A stretch of 64,000 bases of DNA from the sequence record NC_031043.1, one strand, 5' to 3'. Positions 15,065 through 28,175 of this stretch are shown one piece after another (position 1 is the first letter of the stretch; every line of letters begins with the position of its first letter). The notes under the pieces are model-generated. The model was not told where the DNA came from, did not search any database, and saw only the letters and a program-made list of their open reading frames with translations. The position numbers and the translations under genes are program-made.

Positions 15065-16840
15065 ATGGTACAATTCTACGACGAAAACAAATCCGGCAAC
15101 GAATCTGCAGACAACAATGCAGCAACCGGCAATGTTAGCGGTTTCTCCGTCGGTTCAGCAACTGAGATGAACCTGGCCTTCGAATGGAGTGCAGTGTCCT
15201 CTATGGCCGGTAAGTTCGTTGAGCTGATTACCGAAGCCGCGAAAGAAAACAAATACCTGCAGAACTTCCAAGTCGGTACCGTTGATCAGGTTACCGGTGA
15301 ATTCGGTTCTGCGGCATACGTCGCTGGCGAACTGCGTGGCATCCCGCTGTTCGGTATCGTCTTCTTCGAAAAGGGTCTGTCCCTGCGTGCGGTTGTGAAC
15401 AACAACCAAGAAGACTACTACTCCATCACGTCTCTGATTACTAAAGATGTAATCGCGACTGTTGCTAAGACGCTGAAAGAAACTCATAACCTGAGCCAAG
15501 ACCCGCGTTTCATCAACATGAACACCATCCCGGATCTGGATATCGCAATGGACCGTCACCGTGCGCTGTCCATCATGGGCCAGATGATGACCAGCATCTT
15601 CGGTCGTGCTTCTGGTTACCTGGGCAAACTGGTTGTTACTCGTAACGACAAGTTCATCGCTCAAGTCGGCGCTATTGCCGAAGGTACTGTTCGTGATGTG
15701 AACGGTCACGCACAACGTGCTGACTTCGGTATCCGCATGTCTCACGTTCCATTGCAGCAGAACACCGCGCCAACTTTGTTGACCGGTACTAATGCTCAGC
15801 AATACCCAAGCTGCTCTGCGGCTGGTTACGCTAACCTGCGTTACACCGGTGTGGTTAAGAACCCAACCAACACCTTCGACCCGAAACAGATTGCGCCGGA
15901 AATGGTTATCAGCCTGATGGATTCTTCCACTCTGACTGCTAACGCACCGTTCGAGCGTCAAATCCTGATGTTGGGTGCAGCAGCGAAAACTGCAGCACTG
16001 GGCGGCTGGTTGGATTTCGTAGTGAACTCGCTGGACGGTAAGACTCGTAAAATCTCTGCACTGGCTCAGAACGTGAACTGGGGCAAAGACGTGTCTAACA
16101 CCGACTGGAAAGCGCTGGACAAATCCCCGGAAGCGGCGGCTAAGTTCCTGCGTGAGTTCTGCTACGACACTGCTGGTCTGGTTCTGGAACACCGTGCAGG
16201 TAACGGCATCGGCGGTCTGTCTGCGCTGATTGCAGAAGTTGCACAGAACAAACCTCAGGCGCTGGAAACCTTCCTGAACATCCTGGACAATATGTTCCCG
16301 GCTGTGGATGGTCTCACCTTCTCCAAAGGTCTGGCTGCAGCATTCGGTGCTAACGTCACTCTGTCCTCTAAGCACATCGTCTCTGGCGTAGTGCCTACTG
16401 TGACTGGCGTGTACGCTGGTTCTAACGGCCCACGTTCTTACTCTGATATGGACCTGATTCGTCTGGCAACCTACCTGGGTGACCACCGTGCGGAAGTTCT
16501 GCAGGTTCTGCGTGCGCAGTCCTACAACCACCGTAACCTGTCTCCAAAACAGCAGCGCATCTACCTGGCTCAGATGGCCGGTAACGTGTTCTCTGGTAAC
16601 AACCCTGTTCCAACTGGTGAAGGCGTACAGATCGCTATCCATCCTACCTTCGGCAAGTTCCTGTTCGAAGCAATCGATGCGCATGGCTTCCTGCAGCTGA
16701 CTGGTGTGAACACCATGACCGAAGTGGAAAACACTCCGTTCTTCAACACCACCGGCGAAACCTTCGTTCTGTCCGGTATGGGTGGCGTCGATACCAACAA
16801 CTCATTCGACTTCGCTCAGCAGTCTGGCTACTTCAACTAA
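15065..16840 (+). CDS. chmA: chimallin, major phage nuclear shell protein (phiKZ gp54-like)
   Basis: 591 aa directly upstream of the nvRNAP beta-prime N-half, the diagnostic synteny; extreme host-optimal codon bias; extended N- and C-terminal segments rich in F/G/S. Confidence 0.8.
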   Translation: MVQFYDENKSGNESADNNAATGNVSGFSVGSATEMNLAFEWSAVSSMAGKFVELITEAAKENKYLQNFQVGTVDQVTGEFGSAAYVAGELRGIPLFGIVFFEKGLSLRAVVNNNQEDYYSITSLITKDVIATVAKTLKETHNLSQDPRFINMNTIPDLDIAMDRHRALSIMGQMMTSIFGRASGYLGKLVVTRNDKFIAQVGAIAEGTVRDVNGHAQRADFGIRMSHVPLQQNTAPTLLTGTNAQQYPSCSAAGYANLRYTGVVKNPTNTFDPKQIAPEMVISLMDSSTLTANAPFERQILMLGAAAKTAALGGWLDFVVNSLDGKTRKISALAQNVNWGKDVSNTDWKALDKSPEAAAKFLREFCYDTAGLVLEHRAGNGIGGLSALIAEVAQNKPQALETFLNILDNMFPAVDGLTFSKGLAAAFGANVTLSSKHIVSGVVPTVTGVYAGSNGPRSYSDMDLIRLATYLGDHRAEVLQVLRAQSYNHRNLSPKQQRIYLAQMAGNVFSGNNPVPTGEGVQIAIHPTFGKFLFEAIDAHGFLQLTGVNTMTEVENTPFFNTTGETFVLSGMGGVDTNNSFDFAQQSGYFN

Positions 16841-18550: not shown

Positions 18551-19135
18551 ATGAGTATGTGGGACCAACCGGGTAGCGCTTTTAATAAGGTTACCGGAGA
18601 AGCTGCTAACTTCCTGAACAGCACGTTTAACTTAAGCGCAATGGCCGCTGACTTTGTTGACGTGGTAAAGCAGCAAGTCCAGAAGGTTGCTGACATCGAA
18701 ATGTTCCGTCTGACTTCCGCCGCTGCCCGTAAGATGCGTTACGGTGGTGGAGCTGACATGATTCGTCAGTTAGAAAGCATTGGCGATTTCCAATTAGCCC
18801 CGCCGACATTACAGCCATTCATGGTTGCGATGCCAGAATACCGTACGTTGTACAACAACAATATGGCAGCGGGTTACGAAAATGGATTCTCCAAACACGA
18901 CCAGTTCCGCGGTAATGCGTACATGCACACCGATGGGAACTATCGTGAAGCGACGAATGCGATGGTAACCGAGTATCATCCAACACACCTGTTCAACTGG
19001 GTGTTGCCAGAATCACGTGAAGGTGGATTAACACGTATTCAGCAAGTGGATGTGCAAATCAACTGGACACGTATGCGTGATATGGACTGGGAAGATTCTG
19101 ACCCGGCTTCCGAATATAACGCATCCTGTTATTAA
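18551..19135 (+). CDS. conserved hypothetical protein
   Basis: 194 aa; AAGGAG SD; core-block position. Confidence 0.75.
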   Translation: MSMWDQPGSAFNKVTGEAANFLNSTFNLSAMAADFVDVVKQQVQKVADIEMFRLTSAAARKMRYGGGADMIRQLESIGDFQLAPPTLQPFMVAMPEYRTLYNNNMAAGYENGFSKHDQFRGNAYMHTDGNYREATNAMVTEYHPTHLFNWVLPESREGGLTRIQQVDVQINWTRMRDMDWEDSDPASEYNASCY

Positions 19136-22209: not shown

Positions 22210-22896
22210 ATGAATTTCAACATGAAGTTCCTTAAAGACCGTTCTCTGATGCCGAAGACCAAACCTGACGCACGCGGCCAGCAGAAATCGCTGACCATCG
22301 AACCAAACCTGTTTAACGATGAGTGCGAGTCACTGACGTTAAAGTATTTCTTCGGTAAGGGTGAAGGCCTGTACCCATCTGCGAAAGTGGGTACTTTGCG
22401 TGCCATGTGTGATGCTCTCGAAGACGCGCTGCGTAATAAAGAAGCGTCTAAGCTCGAATTCGAAATCACCAACAGCCAGAACAAGCCACCGGCGGTTATC
22501 GTTATCGGTCGTGGCGAAGACCTGATTCCGTTTATCGGTCTGTCTGGTGATGTGAATGGTCAGAAGAAATCACAGAAGTTCATGTGGTATGCTGATAAAG
22601 GTGTGCGTCTGCTGCGCAACGGTCAGCCTGTTCCCGATCTGGAAGTTCACGAGCGTATGACGCGTACCTTCGTGAAAGAGTTCGACATCTTTATCCGTGC
22701 CCTCGAATCGGTCTACAATCCGAAAGAGTGGAACAACAACGCAGGCGGCAGCTATGGCGGTGGTAATAAAGGTGGTAGCTATGGCGGCGGTCAGCAACGT
22801 TCATACGGTGCTAACAACGGCGGTGGTCAACAAGCACCTGCCGGTGGTGGTGCATCCATGTCTACCGCAGTAAACGAATACGACGAAATGTTCTAA
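22210..22896 (+). CDS. chmC: probable ChmC nucleus-associated nucleic-acid-binding protein (phiKZ gp67-like)
   Basis: 228 aa directly before the gp68-like subunit; folded N-domain plus a G/S/Y/N/Q-rich disordered tail ending EYDEMF. Confidence 0.65.
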   Translation: MNFNMKFLKDRSLMPKTKPDARGQQKSLTIEPNLFNDECESLTLKYFFGKGEGLYPSAKVGTLRAMCDALEDALRNKEASKLEFEITNSQNKPPAVIVIGRGEDLIPFIGLSGDVNGQKKSQKFMWYADKGVRLLRNGQPVPDLEVHERMTRTFVKEFDIFIRALESVYNPKEWNNNAGGSYGGGNKGGSYGGGQQRSYGANNGGGQQAPAGGGASMSTAVNEYDEMF

Positions 22897-24674: not shown

Positions 24675-26387
24675 ATGAAACTACTGAGTCTGCAAATGTA
24701 TCCGGTCTACGAAATTCCTGAGCAAATCCGTCGCCGGATTTCATTCAACGCAGGTACCGATGACCTTACTAACCTGAGTGATGTTATCGTACAGAAAGGC
24801 TCAGCCGCCACGAGCGCTTTTGACTACGGCGAAGCGATGGGTAAGATTGTGGGCTTTGACCCTACTCCCGGCAGCTTTGAAAAGCCAATCGTCGATATCT
24901 CAGGCGAGAACAACATGATTAACCCATTCCGCTTTGAGCAGCGTTCACGTATCTATAACTTCGTGGCCGTGATTGTGGTTAATCCTATTAATGAAACACG
25001 TAGCCAAGAAATCCGTTACGTGTTAACGGGCTATACGTCAGAAGCAGATACATCCTTAACGGGTATCTTGCCAGACGACATGGTTCTGTTCATCAACGAT
25101 ATTTACGGTATCCGTTTAAGCTATCGTTACGATGCACACGGTAACCGTTATGTTGACCCGAACTCCTTCCAGATGGTGGACAACTACGTCCTCAGTAATG
25201 CGCTGGTAACTCAGCAGGCAACCGAGTTGACCTTAGACCCGATTGCACTGACCAAAGCTGCGAAGACTGTGGGTAATCTGGATGTGGGTAGCGGCGAGAC
25301 GTTGGAGTTCAACGTTAACAGTGACCAGGTGTTGGGTTCTTCCCTGTCATCCGAAGCACAGCTGTTAACTGCCCAGCTTACCCGTCCAGAATCATTCATC
25401 GGGGCAATGTCTACCGGCTATCTGAATTCCCTGTTAAATGAACAGGAGTCTTCAACGCTGTCAGGTATCAACTCGTTCTTTGATAATGGCGCGCTGTCTC
25501 TCGAAGGTGAGATGCGTCGCTTGGGCGTGGTGAAGTCGTACAAGAACCACAGCTTCTCAACAGCCATGAAGACGGCGTTGTCTCGTAACAACTTCGTTCC
25601 GGATTCGTACCGTCAGGCACAGAATGCCAAGTTCCGTTTAGCGGACTTGCGTGTTTGTCTGTTCAACCCGGGTGATTTAAACCGCATGATTTCCGAGTCG
25701 CTGTCTGTTGCGATGCGTAACATGCAACTGGGTATCGATAAGACCGATAACTGGACTTCCATGAACGGCTTCTCTACAGATGCGTCCTTGGTGGCCTACG
25801 ATATTGGCATGCGTGTTAGTCAGGTAATGGCAAAGAACCTGATTGGTGCTATTCGCATGACCTTCGATAACCGTTCTGCCAACTTCGATACCATTCCACT
25901 GCTTTCAATTATTCCGGGTTCTGCGGAATCGTTAAGTGAAGGCGGGATTCCAGTATTGATGGCGCGTAACTTCCAACGTGAAATGCATCAGACCTTGGTG
26001 CAGGCTACCCGACACAACCAAGTGCGTTGTAAGGTAGTTGTCATTGCCCGTCTGGGTCAGGTGACGCGTGTTGAAATTACGATTGATGGTGAACTGGTAA
26101 CTGAATACTTCACCTTTGCTTCCTTCATGTCTTCCCGTCTGCACATTGGGTTGACTTACGATAACACTTACAACAACACGATTGCGAAGAACACCAACGT
26201 GTTGTTTGATACAATCCAGAATGGTTTTGATGAATATACTCGTCGTGAGTCCTCGCGCGATATGTTGATTTCATTACCAGACGCTCCTACCAACGGGTTC
26301 TCGATTCCGGAAACTGCTCCGGCTTCAACTCCCGCCGTCGGTGGGTTCTCGTTCGGCAATGATGACGTCAGCGGATTCAAACTTTAA
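24675..26387 (+). CDS. picA: probable PicA/Imp1 nuclear import protein (phiKZ gp69-like)
   Basis: 570 aa directly after the gp68-like gene and two genes before nvRNAP beta (synteny); disordered GF-containing tail. Confidence 0.65.
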   Translation: MKLLSLQMYPVYEIPEQIRRRISFNAGTDDLTNLSDVIVQKGSAATSAFDYGEAMGKIVGFDPTPGSFEKPIVDISGENNMINPFRFEQRSRIYNFVAVIVVNPINETRSQEIRYVLTGYTSEADTSLTGILPDDMVLFINDIYGIRLSYRYDAHGNRYVDPNSFQMVDNYVLSNALVTQQATELTLDPIALTKAAKTVGNLDVGSGETLEFNVNSDQVLGSSLSSEAQLLTAQLTRPESFIGAMSTGYLNSLLNEQESSTLSGINSFFDNGALSLEGEMRRLGVVKSYKNHSFSTAMKTALSRNNFVPDSYRQAQNAKFRLADLRVCLFNPGDLNRMISESLSVAMRNMQLGIDKTDNWTSMNGFSTDASLVAYDIGMRVSQVMAKNLIGAIRMTFDNRSANFDTIPLLSIIPGSAESLSEGGIPVLMARNFQREMHQTLVQATRHNQVRCKVVVIARLGQVTRVEITIDGELVTEYFTFASFMSSRLHIGLTYDNTYNNTIAKNTNVLFDTIQNGFDEYTRRESSRDMLISLPDAPTNGFSIPETAPASTPAVGGFSFGNDDVSGFKL

Positions 26388-26398
26388 AGGATAAGACG

Positions 26399-27817
26399 AT
26401 GAGTAACATGACCATTATTGAGTTCTACCGCAAACAACTGGCTTCTTTGGGCATGGTTGACCGTGACGGCTTGCTCTTCTTTGAAGATGACGACCAGCAG
26501 GACCCGGTGAAGTTTAAGTTCGCTGGTGAAACCCGTCAGATGGTGTTGCCAACGTACCAGCTGATTAAAGCAGGTCTGAAAGATGAGATGGGGAATGATT
26601 GTCATGCTTTCCATCCCATCTGCGAGTCTGTACTGACCGGCGAGTCAGGTACTATCCGCTTCCTTAAGCAGGCGATTAAGAATCGTCTGTACGTTAAAGG
26701 CATGAGCTTCATTACTTACTTGTTGAAAGCATTGGCGGAAGGTAAATCCTCCCGCTCTGCCACCCTCAAGAAGTTTGTGGCGTCAATGACCGAAGGGATT
26801 GCGGAACCGAAGTTTGATGATAAGTTGTTCCGTAGCTGGACGAACGTGACCAACTACATCAAAGACAAGATGGATAAGAAAACCCGTCTGATGCTGTACA
26901 TCTCATCGAATCAAATGATTGACGGTGAGAAGTATATTCGTGCGGCAACTTATTCACACGCATTCAAACAGGAAACGCTGGACGACAAGGCAACTTACTT
27001 TGGCGTCCGCTTGGAACGTAAGCAGGATAAAGTGATTATTCACAATCTGCTGAATGCGGTCTTTGGTTGGTATCCGGAAGAAGTGGGGTCGAATGACCAG
27101 CGTCCGTATTACGGTTCGCTGATTCGTGGCTGGGCGGAGTTCGTGCTGAACTTCAACAAGTACGCGAAAGGCCTCAAGGATATCGTGCCTGAGTACGAAC
27201 TGCTGAATGCCGAATGGATTGATGCGGTGAACGACCTGTCTGAGTTTGATGGTAAAATTCAAATCCTACCATTCAATACTGGCAGTCGTAAAGAAGATGA
27301 AGAGACCACCCAGCGTGAATTCCGCGTAGGTGGTAATCGTGGGTATCAAGAGCCGGTGGTTCAGACGACGTCCGAAGTACGTCAGACGGAAAACGGGATG
27401 ATTGACCCACTCAGTCTGCTGTCCTCAAACAAACCAGCGGAAGGGAATATCTTTGCACAAGGTGGTCGTCCTGTAGACCTGAGCAAATACACCCCGCTGG
27501 AACAGAAGTTGATTCGTGAAGGACGTACTGCACCACAGCCATCTATCATTACGAAGATGTCACTGTCCGAAGCACTGGGCGGTGGTAAGCGCAGTGCAGG
27601 TTATTCTGCTAACGATTTCTTCGCCGGTAGTTCTAACAACGTGTTCACGAACACAACAACCAGCAACAACCCGTTCACGTCCGGTGTGAGCAATAATCCG
27701 TTCACTGCGAACGCGGCAAGTAATAACCCATTCACAGGTGGGGCTTCGAATAACCCGTTCAATGCAGGTACTACCAACAGTGGTGGTAATGACCTGTTTA
27801 GTAACGGCGCATTCTAA
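26399..27817 (+). CDS. conserved hypothetical protein (phiKZ gp70-like) with N-x-x-F repeat tail
   Basis: 472 aa; core-block position; SNNPF x4. Confidence 0.75.
   Translation: MSNMTIIEFYRKQLASLGMVDRDGLLFFEDDDQQDPVKFKFAGETRQMVLPTYQLIKAGLKDEMGNDCHAFHPICESVLTGESGTIRFLKQAIKNRLYVKGMSFITYLLKALAEGKSSRSATLKKFVASMTEGIAEPKFDDKLFRSWTNVTNYIKDKMDKKTRLMLYISSNQMIDGEKYIRAATYSHAFKQETLDDKATYFGVRLERKQDKVIIHNLLNAVFGWYPEEVGSNDQRPYYGSLIRGWAEFVLNFNKYAKGLKDIVPEYELLNAEWIDAVNDLSEFDGKIQILPFNTGSRKEDEETTQREFRVGGNRGYQEPVVQTTSEVRQTENGMIDPLSLLSSNKPAEGNIFAQGGRPVDLSKYTPLEQKLIREGRTAPQPSIITKMSLSEALGGGKRSAGYSANDFFAGSSNNVFTNTTTSNNPFTSGVSNNPFTANAASNNPFTGGASNNPFNAGTTNSGGNDLFSNGAF
27662..27760 (+). repeat. coding tandem repeat SNNPF x4
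   Basis: Units begin 27, 30 and 27 nt apart; synonymous variation at the DNA level. Confidence 0.9.
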
Positions 27818-27819
27818 GC

Positions 27820-27858
27820 AAAAAATAAATAAGGGGTGAAAGCCCCTTATTTTTTTAC
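27820..27858. terminator. bidirectional terminator
   Basis: AATAAGGGG-TGAAAG-CCCCTTATT flanked by A and T tracts between convergent genes. Confidence 0.85.
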
Positions 27859-28175
27859 ACAACCGCTGATTCCATTATCTCTGCGACCACAGCCATGCTA
27901 GGGATAATTAACGATTTAATCTCTGGAGTGAAATCCATTGGGCTACGAAGGTCGTTCAGTAGCATTAGCGGGAAGATAAGCTCGCTGGAAATCCCCGCGA
28001 GTTTGCAGTATGCGTACAAACTGTGAACCTCCGGATACGAGTAACTCGGATTGACTGACACAGTCTGCGTTTCCGGATGGCCACGTAAGTAATCGAGATG
28101 GTCAATGATTATCTGACGTTCGATAGTCCCCAATGCGGGGATGCCTGACTCATACGTCATGAAGCTATCTAGCAC
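27855..28175 (-). CDS. LysM-like/T4 gp53-like small baseplate protein candidate
   Basis: GTG start with AAGGAGG SD; LLNDLRSPMDFTPEIKSLIIP resembles the LysM tail (N.i.dP..l..G..L.IP). Confidence 0.5.
   Translation of the reverse strand: MLDSFMTYESGIPALGTIERQIIIDHLDYLRGHPETQTVSVNPSYSYPEVHSLYAYCKLAGISSELIFPLMLLNDLRSPMDFTPEIKSLIIPSMAVVAEIMESAVV

Follow-up and report, generated by a model that had tools for sequence, protein, structure and literature searches.

A multivalent phenylalanine-repeat tail encoded downstream of picA in Erwinia phage vB_EamM_Phobos, and the within-genome co-variation of its motif type

Results

The gene downstream of picA

The stretch of DNA considered here, which we refer to as the window, comprises bases 1-64000 of the 229.5-kb genome of the Erwinia jumbo phage vB_EamM_Phobos (KX397372). 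Our subject is a 472-amino-acid (aa) open reading frame (ORF) on the forward strand (26399..27817), which is 100% identical to a Phobos "hypothetical protein" at the same coordinates in KX397372, and in particular the low-complexity C-terminal tail of its product, in which phenylalanine recurs in N-x-x-F units. The gene is the ortholog of PhiKZ gp70, PhiPA3 gp64 and 201phi2-1 gp126, and we refer to it as the gp70-family gene. Its product matched phrog_3520 in the PHROGs database at 5e-128, a profile that is also matched by PhiPA3 gp64 (1.8e-133) and Goslar gp173 (1.5e-63). A TBLASTN query with the protein matched 119 phage records, including PhiPA3, 201phi2-1, Goslar, RAY and SPN3US, and a search against Pfam yielded no significant match.

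A previous reading of this DNA, made from the sequence only, had placed the gene directly after PicA, and this position was borne out. The upstream gene, on the forward strand at 24675..26387, encodes a 570-aa ortholog of PicA (also named Imp1) that matched phrog_3141 at 1.3e-145, a family common to the Phobos protein, PhiPA3 gp63 (PicA) and Goslar gp174. The Phobos protein is 43% identical to SPN3US_0031, which is given as a homolog of gp63 by Enustun 2023 (PMC10643120). Pairwise BLAST of Phobos PicA against the PhiPA3 proteins was not significant, as was also the case for the probable chimallin (ChmA) described below, and we therefore base the orthology of both on synteny, on SPN3US intermediates and on PHROG profiles. 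Only 11 nt, without a convincing terminator, separate picA from the gp70-family gene; it is plausible that the two genes are co-transcribed. A bidirectional intrinsic terminator hairpin (27827..27852, both strands) ends the PicA-gp70 unit and also a convergent small gene (27855..28175). The gene order of ChmC, the gp68-like gene of non-virion RNA polymerase (nvRNAP), PicA, the gp70-like gene, a small reverse gene and nvRNAP beta was kept in all of the loci that we fetched. The Pseudomonas-phage orthologs gp64, gp70 and gp126 thus resemble the Phobos protein both in an orthologous N-terminal domain (N-domain) and in occupying the slot after PicA and before nvRNAP beta.

Several published observations bear on this family. 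PhiPA3 gp64 was identified by ChmA and RecA proximity labelling, localises to the nuclear shell, and was pulled down with ChmB (PMC10643120), and PhiKZ gp70 is among the listed nuclear proteins of that phage (bioRxiv 10.1101/2024.03.27.586873). We found no description of the C-terminal tails of the gp70/gp64 family in the literature searched, and the reviews and the transposon and antisense functional-genomics literature that we examined do not mention gp70/gp64. Likewise, our search found no literature that treats phage-nucleus proteins as nucleoporin-like repeats; the two terms occurred together only in general reviews.

The N-x-x-F repeat tail

The tail (residues 395-472; 27581..27814, forward strand) contains eight N-x-x-F units, four of which are NNPF. 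From the N-terminal side these are NDFF (27611-27622), NNVF (27635-27646), a core array of four SNNPF units (27665..27760, with NNPF at 27665-27676, 27692-27703, 27722-27733 and 27749-27760), NDLF (27788-27799) and NGAF (27803-27814), all on the forward strand. The sequence-only reading had described the last ~70 aa as rich in S, T, N, G and A with exactly these eight units, and we confirmed that description, the array occupying 72 residues. The tail phenylalanines are at positions 407/408, 416, 426, 435, 445, 454, 467 and 472, with a spacing of 8-13 residues. The composition of residues 396-472 is dominated by N (17), S (11), G (10), A (9), F (9), T (9) and P (4), only 4 of the 77 residues are charged, and none of the nine phenylalanines is part of an FG dipeptide. 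When the tail residues were shuffled 100,000 times, the frequency with which eight N-x-x-F units arose was 1e-5, whereas four NNPF units never arose.

Examination of the codons bore out the further claim that the repeats are synonymously diverged and that selection acts on the peptide. The four SNNPF cores differ at synonymous codon positions only (AGC/AGT/TCG, AAC/AAT and CCG/CCA), and Tandem Repeats Finder identified no tandem repeat in the tail DNA; together these argue for maintenance of the repeat at the level of the peptide. Across the six sequences from the Phobos clade, conservation stands at 93% in the Phe columns and at 72% in the other tail columns, and the spacers carry both substitutions and indels. 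Overall, the tail has diverged more quickly than the N-domain in this clade (60-63% as against 75-78% identity). Such a pattern would be expected of stickers that are conserved and spacers that drift.

Structure prediction with AlphaFold2 (AF2), run on an alignment of 28 sequences, divides the protein into three parts. A folded N-terminal domain (residues 1-288; 26399..27262, forward strand) was modelled with a predicted local distance difference test score (pLDDT) of ~90. It is followed by a linker predicted to be disordered (residues 289-394; 27263..27580, forward strand), with pLDDT <50 except at residues 361-373 (~69), near which the model places a short conserved helix; a linker block, TPLEQKL..EGR / SLSEALGG, is conserved within the enterobacterial group. 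In all, the C-terminal 184 residues are predicted to be disordered, and the tail (394-472) has a pLDDT of 32-38. The N-domain gave no informative match in the PDB (Foldseek best E 0.4), and in the wide VIA search its best match, with a Z of 6.0, was to the generic helical fold of a designed protein, while in BFVD the only matches were jumbo-phage orthologs; the modelled N-domain is probably a fold specific to this family. Invariant residues in the N-domain region include Y10, P51, H72, P73, E76, S83, R181, N253, N293 and G295. Taking shuffles, codons, column conservation and predicted structure together, we consider the tail shown, at the level of sequence and prediction, to be a selected, disordered, uncharged, multivalent Phe-repeat module.

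Tails across the gp70/gp64 family

A phmmer search with the N-domain alone yielded 731 clusters (50% identity) at E<=1e-3, and the tail counts given here were taken from the 147 full-length representatives listed. Nearly all of these representatives have a low-complexity C-terminal tail, as does every member of the gp64/gp70/gp126 family that we examined individually. In approximately 99 of the 147 the tail is polar, lacks charge and has a hydrophobic or aromatic residue that recurs; this residue is Y in 30, M in 29, F in 16, V in 15, and L, W or I in 9; motifs among them include GYPQQ, QPMM, GWGQP, GFG, SMFG, NPF and LLGG. The remainder are R/D-rich (26/147, ~18%) or mixed (22/147). The sequence-only reading had turned on conservation of the repeat across homologs: the presence of a low-complexity tail held up on this count, whereas the NPF array itself was found in only 3 of ~147 clusters, namely the Phobos/Derbicus/CR5 group, P0033 (~10 NPF) and P0034 (4 NPF).

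In the Pseudomonas phages the gp70-family tails are rich in M, P, Q and G, have at most one ANPF or QNPF, and end in GLL or GLI, whereas the NNPF array is limited to the Phobos/Derbicus/CR5 group and two metagenomic clusters. PhiPA3, 201phi2-1 and Noxifer each keep a single ANPF/QNPF. Orthologs from sister lineages (P0021, P0024, L028 and L031) have literal FG repeats such as SFGGG and GFG. These comparisons suggest that this kind of tail is family-wide and that the motif is a lineage-specific variant. We considered whether the motif might instead be specific to the host; this was ruled out, as Erwinia phages have both NPF-type and LLGG-type tails. We also note the 407-aa protein of the Salmonella phage SPFM10 (P0027/P0043), in which the blocks of the N-domain are in reversed order and for which phmmer reports eight stretches; this looks more like an assembly or annotation artefact than a real variant.

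Co-variation of motif type with PicA and a third protein

The shell association of PhiPA3 gp64 was known before; what appears to be new here, and is the central result of this work, is that the motif type of the tail co-varies within genomes among tail-bearing proteins. The C-terminal tail of Phobos PicA (26265..26384, forward strand) has three stickers of the form GF-x-hydrophobic (GFSI, GFSF and GFKL), alongside the NNPF/N-x-x-F units of the gp70-family tail. In the FG lineage (L028 and L031) PicA has SFGSFGSFG and VFGAFGE and the gp70-family tail has SFGGG, SSFG and GFG. Phages of the SPN3US and Asesino types have LGGGLGG in PicA and LLGG/LGG in the gp70-family tail, and the ChrisDB type has NSLLD and NSLLGG, respectively. 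The pairing continues in P0006/P0008 (two GFTL in PicA; SLF/GLF in the gp70-family tail), in P0033 (GGNPFG and NNNPFG; ~10 NPFG) and in P0031 (GLFGGG and NLFS; SMFG/NMFG). For P0033, P0031 and P0006/P0008, and for G003 in the linker of the third protein introduced below, a match in motif was predicted and checked afterwards, and in every case the prediction was correct.

A six-frame search of the Phobos genome revealed a third protein of this kind, since 8 of the 10 NNPF tetrapeptides fall within the gp70-family protein and a 517-aa protein matching phrog_8185. The gene for the latter lies outside the window (genome coordinates 73277..74830, forward strand), after an nvRNAP gp123-like gene and close to the gene for the major capsid protein, and its product has four (S/A)NNPFL in an internal N/S/G-rich linker (residues ~110-160). 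The linker motif tracked the motif type of the gp70-family tail in all 12 of the 12 genomes checked: it is NPFL/NPFT in EarlPhillipIV and CR5, GGLGG/GGLLGG in SPN3US, Asesino, ChrisDB and Kwan, SGSLLGGG in G003 (where the gp70-family tail has SGGSLLGG), and GGFG/TFGG/NFG in the FG lineage. The protein had no Pfam match and no usable Atlas match. It is confined to the SPN3US/Erwinia group, and profile searches of PhiPA3, Goslar, 201phi2-1, RAY and pVa-21 recovered no homologs. Gene conversion between the two NNPF arrays was considered and rejected, as their longest shared DNA word is 15 nt, a length reached by 14% of synonymous recodings.

To put numbers on the co-variation we compared the cosine similarity of hydrophobe-containing 3-mers between proteins of the same genome and of different genomes, with a permutation test, using 11-16 genomes from one large enterobacterial-phage clade. 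The gp70-family tail and the PicA tail had a similarity of 0.24-0.26 within genomes and 0.09-0.12 between them (p<2e-5, for 11 and for 16 genomes). Values for the gp70-family tail and the third-protein linker were 0.285 and 0.105 (p=3e-4), and those for the PicA tail and the third-protein linker were 0.133 and 0.067 (p=0.009).

The ChmC (Imp6) ortholog (22210..22896, forward strand), which has a GGSYGGG-type N/G-rich tail with an acidic-aromatic tip, served as a negative control. ChmC (PhiPA3 gp61, PhiKZ gp67) is like the gp70-family protein in belonging to the conserved gene block, in being shell-associated and in having an uncharged, N/G-rich, disordered C-terminal tail, and experiments have shown that this tail drives RNA-protein condensates (PMC11077065). 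It differs in that its tail places Tyr in G/N/Q spacers, ends in the acidic-aromatic tip and is attached to a Whirly RNA-binding domain, and the motif type of the PicA, gp70-family and third-protein regions is absent from it: comparison of the ChmC tail with each of these three regions revealed no motif sharing and was not significant. Because the ChmC tails are unmatched in the same genomes, we rejected a genome-wide compositional bias of disordered regions as the source of the co-variation.

Phylogeny indicates that at least one of the changes in motif was concerted. An IQ-TREE phylogeny of the N-domain puts the FG clade inside Leu-type clades with support of 100/99; its sister is Asesino/EaH2, and SPN3US is next. 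Members of the FG clade have turned to a Phe/Gly type in PicA (SFGSFGSFG), ChmA (PSFGG and NSFGSD) and the third protein (GGFG and TFGG), whereas their relatives SPN3US and Asesino have LGG-type motifs in PicA, ChmA and the third protein. The nesting argues that the switch from LGG to FG in the gp70-family tail, PicA, the third protein and ChmA was independent and concerted. A wider tree (FastTree) places the Phe-type P0034, P0033, P0031 and P0029 basal to a Leu-type crown; inside that crown, the Phe type is found again in the Phobos group and in the FG clade. This topology corresponds to ~2-4 switches of motif type. Farther afield, PhiPA3, 201phi2-1 and Noxifer have GLL-type ends common to PicA and gp64, and pVa-21 and Xoo-sp14 have R/D-rich tracts common to the PicA and gp70-family tails.

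Phobos also encodes single NPF tripeptides near the termini of other proteins, at 224753-225319, 107605-108342 and 120220-121788 on the forward strand and at 213381-214259 on the reverse strand; for instance, a 188-aa protein has NRNNPFTQ at residue 32, and in a 245-aa protein RQFNPFEG lies 7 residues from the end. With the two repeat proteins set aside, 12 NPF were observed compared with ~6.7 expected. These could be single-copy versions of the array motif, or could be present by chance.

A possible link to chimallin

Although annotated as hypothetical, the 591-aa product of the ORF at 15065..16840 (forward strand) is a probable chimallin. The gene is directly upstream of nvRNAP beta-prime, as PhiKZ gp54 is upstream of gp55, and its product is 42% identical to SPN3US_0022, which by our own count of locus tags is RefSeq gp244; SPN3US gp244 is named as chimallin by Laughlin 2022 (PMC9365700). 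BLAST of the Phobos protein against PhiPA3 ChmA was not significant, and PHROGs places it separately (phrog_8316), so that we regard it as a probable, divergent ChmA.

The termini of this protein have motifs of the same Phe-based kind. One is SGFSVG in the flexible N-terminal tail (~15128-15157, forward strand), and the other is at the C-terminal end (16754-16837, forward strand). The N-tail motif differs by lineage: Phobos has SGFSVG, the FG clade PSFGGVG and SPN3US PLGGLG. The signal was weaker here: similarity between the ChmA N-tail and the PicA or gp70-family tail was ~0.08 in the same genome and 0.03-0.04 in different genomes (p=2e-4 to 7e-3). In some lineages the extreme C-termini of ChmA, PicA and the gp70-family protein are alike (SSFNF, DSFNF and GGFSF in G003; HFTF, PFSF and NFTF in L026). 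In 201phi2-1 and Goslar, the terminal segments of ChmA (the N-terminal NTS and C-terminal CTS) dock on adjacent protomers and thereby hold the lattice together (PMC9365700).

Neighboring genes

The small convergent gene that shares the terminator with the gp70-family gene encodes a 106-aa protein (phrog_3455; 27855-28175, reverse strand). Its position and opposite orientation were kept in every chimallivirus locus that we fetched, these being from PhiPA3-like phages, Goslar, RAY, pVa-21, SPN3US and Xoo-sp14. Elsewhere in the block, the ChmC ortholog combines a domain that binds nucleic acid with a disordered linker of G, Q and N and an acidic tip, resembling in this respect the bacterial single-stranded DNA-binding protein. 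Its tail is rich in G, N, Q and Y, and the tip, which is NEYDEMF in Phobos and DSYDEFL, SFDDIML or NFDDFV in relatives, is far more conserved than the linker. An ortholog of Imp3 is encoded at 18551-19135 (forward strand), with 25% identity to PhiPA3 gp55 / PhiKZ gp59 (E=1e-9). With this ORF, Phobos has the whole of the proposed core import set (Imp1/PicA, Imp3 and Imp6/ChmC), and all three genes are at most 8 kb from the gp70-family gene.

Discussion

We propose that these tails constitute a multivalent sticker-and-spacer module that would couple shell-associated import proteins to each other, either by contact between tails or by docking in common on ChmA, and on the strength of the sequence comparisons we hold the proposal in even balance. 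The NNPF/N-x-x-F tail would be the form taken in the Phobos lineage by a disordered sticker-and-spacer C-terminal domain of the chimallivirus gp70/gp64 family, in which evenly spaced phenylalanines would act as stickers and the N/S/T/G/A segments as flexible, uncharged spacers. In what we regard as the most economical mechanism, many weak hydrophobic contacts would then couple the gp70-family protein to proteins with the same type of motif. The candidate partners are the C-terminal tail of PicA, the linker of the third protein with its four NNPFL, the flexible N-terminal tail of ChmA and perhaps its C-terminal end. Coupling might be by direct cohesion of like with like, or the tails might use the docking sites on ChmA that receive its own terminal segments; in either mode, import machinery that contains PicA would be tethered with high avidity, and clustered, at sites on the nuclear shell. 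We infer both the physical contact and any role in import. Like-with-like cohesion would explain why the family tolerates almost any sticker chemistry, including self-complementary R/D tracts, and also why the partners switch together.

A number of observations weigh against this proposal. When PhiKZ gp70 was co-expressed with Imp1 (PicA) in E. coli the two did not co-purify, while PhiKZ gp67 (Imp6/ChmC) did co-purify with Imp1, and gp70 is absent from the results of the import-escape selection (bioRxiv 10.1101/2024.03.27.586873). The AF2 model leaves the tail undocked on its own N-domain. The match between the Phobos tails is one of sticker class and not of exact motif, as the PicA tail is of the GF-x-hydrophobic type and has no NNPF, and sharing with the C-terminal end of ChmA is marginal (p 0.04-0.12). 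Our permutations ignore phylogeny, and there are few fully independent switches (~2-4). Outside the enterobacterial group the motif match is partial: PicA of RAY and of Goslar has no such tail, and in FBKp24 the gp70-family tail is R/D-rich and PicA is without an R/D-rich tail.

Among the rivals to the coupling proposal we rank first the possibility that the motifs mimic the tails of ChmA, copying its NTS and CTS docking segments so that a folded groove on ChmA would bind the array as a multivalent ligand. Bound in this way, the array would anchor the protein in the lattice, or would locally displace ChmA tails and loosen the lattice. The change of the ChmA N-tail motif with the motif type of the lineage is consistent with this, as are the extreme C-termini common to ChmA, PicA and the gp70-family protein in G003 and L026 and the established docking of the NTS and CTS in 201phi2-1 and Goslar (PMC9365700). 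Both the ChmA segments (NTS, CTS1 and CTS2), through which ChmA makes its lattice contacts, and the tails are flexible terminal segments with hydrophobic motifs, but the similarity is modest, and weak overall at the C-terminal end, and it was not seen in the Pseudomonas phages that we examined. Moreover, the ChmA motif may be situated either in the docking NTS or in a dispensable disordered part of the N-tail. Most importantly, a folded pocket should fix the motif, yet the motif classes of the family are very diverse. Since a single folded receptor pocket would be expected to freeze the motif in this way, we consider mimicry of the ChmA groove unlikely to be the principal explanation and treat it as a rival instead of as the lead, while noting that it is compatible with like-with-like cohesion and that the two are not mutually exclusive.

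The sequence-only reading had raised the possibility of a nucleoporin-like selectivity filter at the phage nuclear pore. Stated strictly, the tails of the gp70-family protein, PicA and ChmA would form a cohesive hydrophobic meshwork plugging an opening in the chimallin lattice, and so a permeability barrier for PicA-bound cargo. Much of the resemblance behind this idea stood: the tail is predicted to be disordered, its Phe residues are regular and its spacers uncharged and rich in N, S, T and G, as in the cohesive GLFG-type FG domains of eukaryotes, and, judging from the shell localisation of the PhiPA3 ortholog (PMC10643120), it would be found at a nucleus-like boundary. True FG, GFG, SFG and MFG repeats occur in sister lineages, the gene adjoins picA, and its motif type is common with the PicA tail. 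Taken with the repeat module itself and the shell localisation of the PhiPA3 ortholog, the FG repeats and the shared motif type suggest a functional tie between the tail and the import factor. In addition, the pores of the native chimallin lattice are ~1.4 nm and too small for folded proteins (PMC9365700), which calls for a separate site of import.

The filter itself fared less well. There is no homology between the tail and the FG nucleoporins, whose FG domains are hundreds of residues long as against ~70 aa here, and the Phobos tail, with nine phenylalanines, has no FG dipeptide. Part of the family has charged tails, and the 26 of 147 that are R/D-rich would be unable to form a hydrophobic phase. 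A Pfam scan for Nucleoporin_FG at E<=1 gave no match in the Phobos tail or in eight orthologs of FG, MFG or NPF type, a test that is weakened by low-complexity filters. To our knowledge there is no pore that contains a gp70-family protein, and we know of no transport receptor or pore scaffold in the phage gp70-family system. The absence of gp70 from import-escape genetics and its failure to co-purify with PhiKZ Imp1 count here as well. The strict barrier is a narrower version of the coupling proposal, and the FG-type sister lineages and the link to PicA lend it real support; we found no direct evidence of a filter or pore, and judge the strict analogy slightly less probable than mimicry of ChmA.

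A broader version of the analogy can also be put forward, in which the tails of the gp70-family protein, PicA, the third protein and chimallin would together make a cohesive meshwork that excludes bulk cytoplasmic proteins and admits PicA-licensed cargo, with a sticker (F, L, M, Y or W) that drifts and yet stays matched. The requirement that the stickers of the partners stay matched would explain the concerted switches of motif type. We think it doubtful, and a shade more so than the strict version.

It is also conceivable that the tail is a neutral low-complexity extension, such as an entropic bristle, a spacer or a solubility tag that arose by slippage, and that the similarity among proteins reflects a shared mutational or compositional bias. 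The great variability of tail composition across the family, and the faster divergence of the tail than of the N-domain, would fit such an origin. We nevertheless consider it improbable, for the stickers are more conserved than the spacers, there is no repeat at the DNA level and no sign of gene conversion, the ChmC tail of the same genomes lacks the shared motif type, and the switch from LGG to FG was concerted across unlinked genes.

Finally, the analogy to tandem-NPF ligands of EH domains such as epsin and Rabenosyn-5, in which the NPF units would bind an EH-like domain of phage or host, did not survive: despite four NPF units in a disordered region, a second Phobos protein with four more and a weak resemblance to the Rabenosyn-5 NPF profile PF16601 (E=0.4, with 11.6 bits against a cut-off of 27.6 bits), no EH domain (PF12763) was detected in the phage genome, which is a weak test since 14 control genomes were silent too, and orthologs swap NPF for LLGG, FG, MFG, GYPQQ, R/D-rich and other non-NPF stickers while keeping the architecture, so that we regard it as very improbable.

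Conclusions

The passage of folded proteins across the chimallin shell stands as the main open question on the phage nucleus. With the tail described here, a conserved, shell-associated neighbor of PicA now has a concrete and testable property, namely a multivalent hydrophobic-sticker tail, and the co-variation of motif type points to new candidate members of the network of import and shell proteins. Should the strict analogy to nucleoporins prove right, a protein organelle of a virus and the nuclear pore of eukaryotes would provide a clear example of convergent evolution. We offer the gp70-family tail as a lead, open to experimental test, on the way in which proteins gain entry to the phage nucleus.

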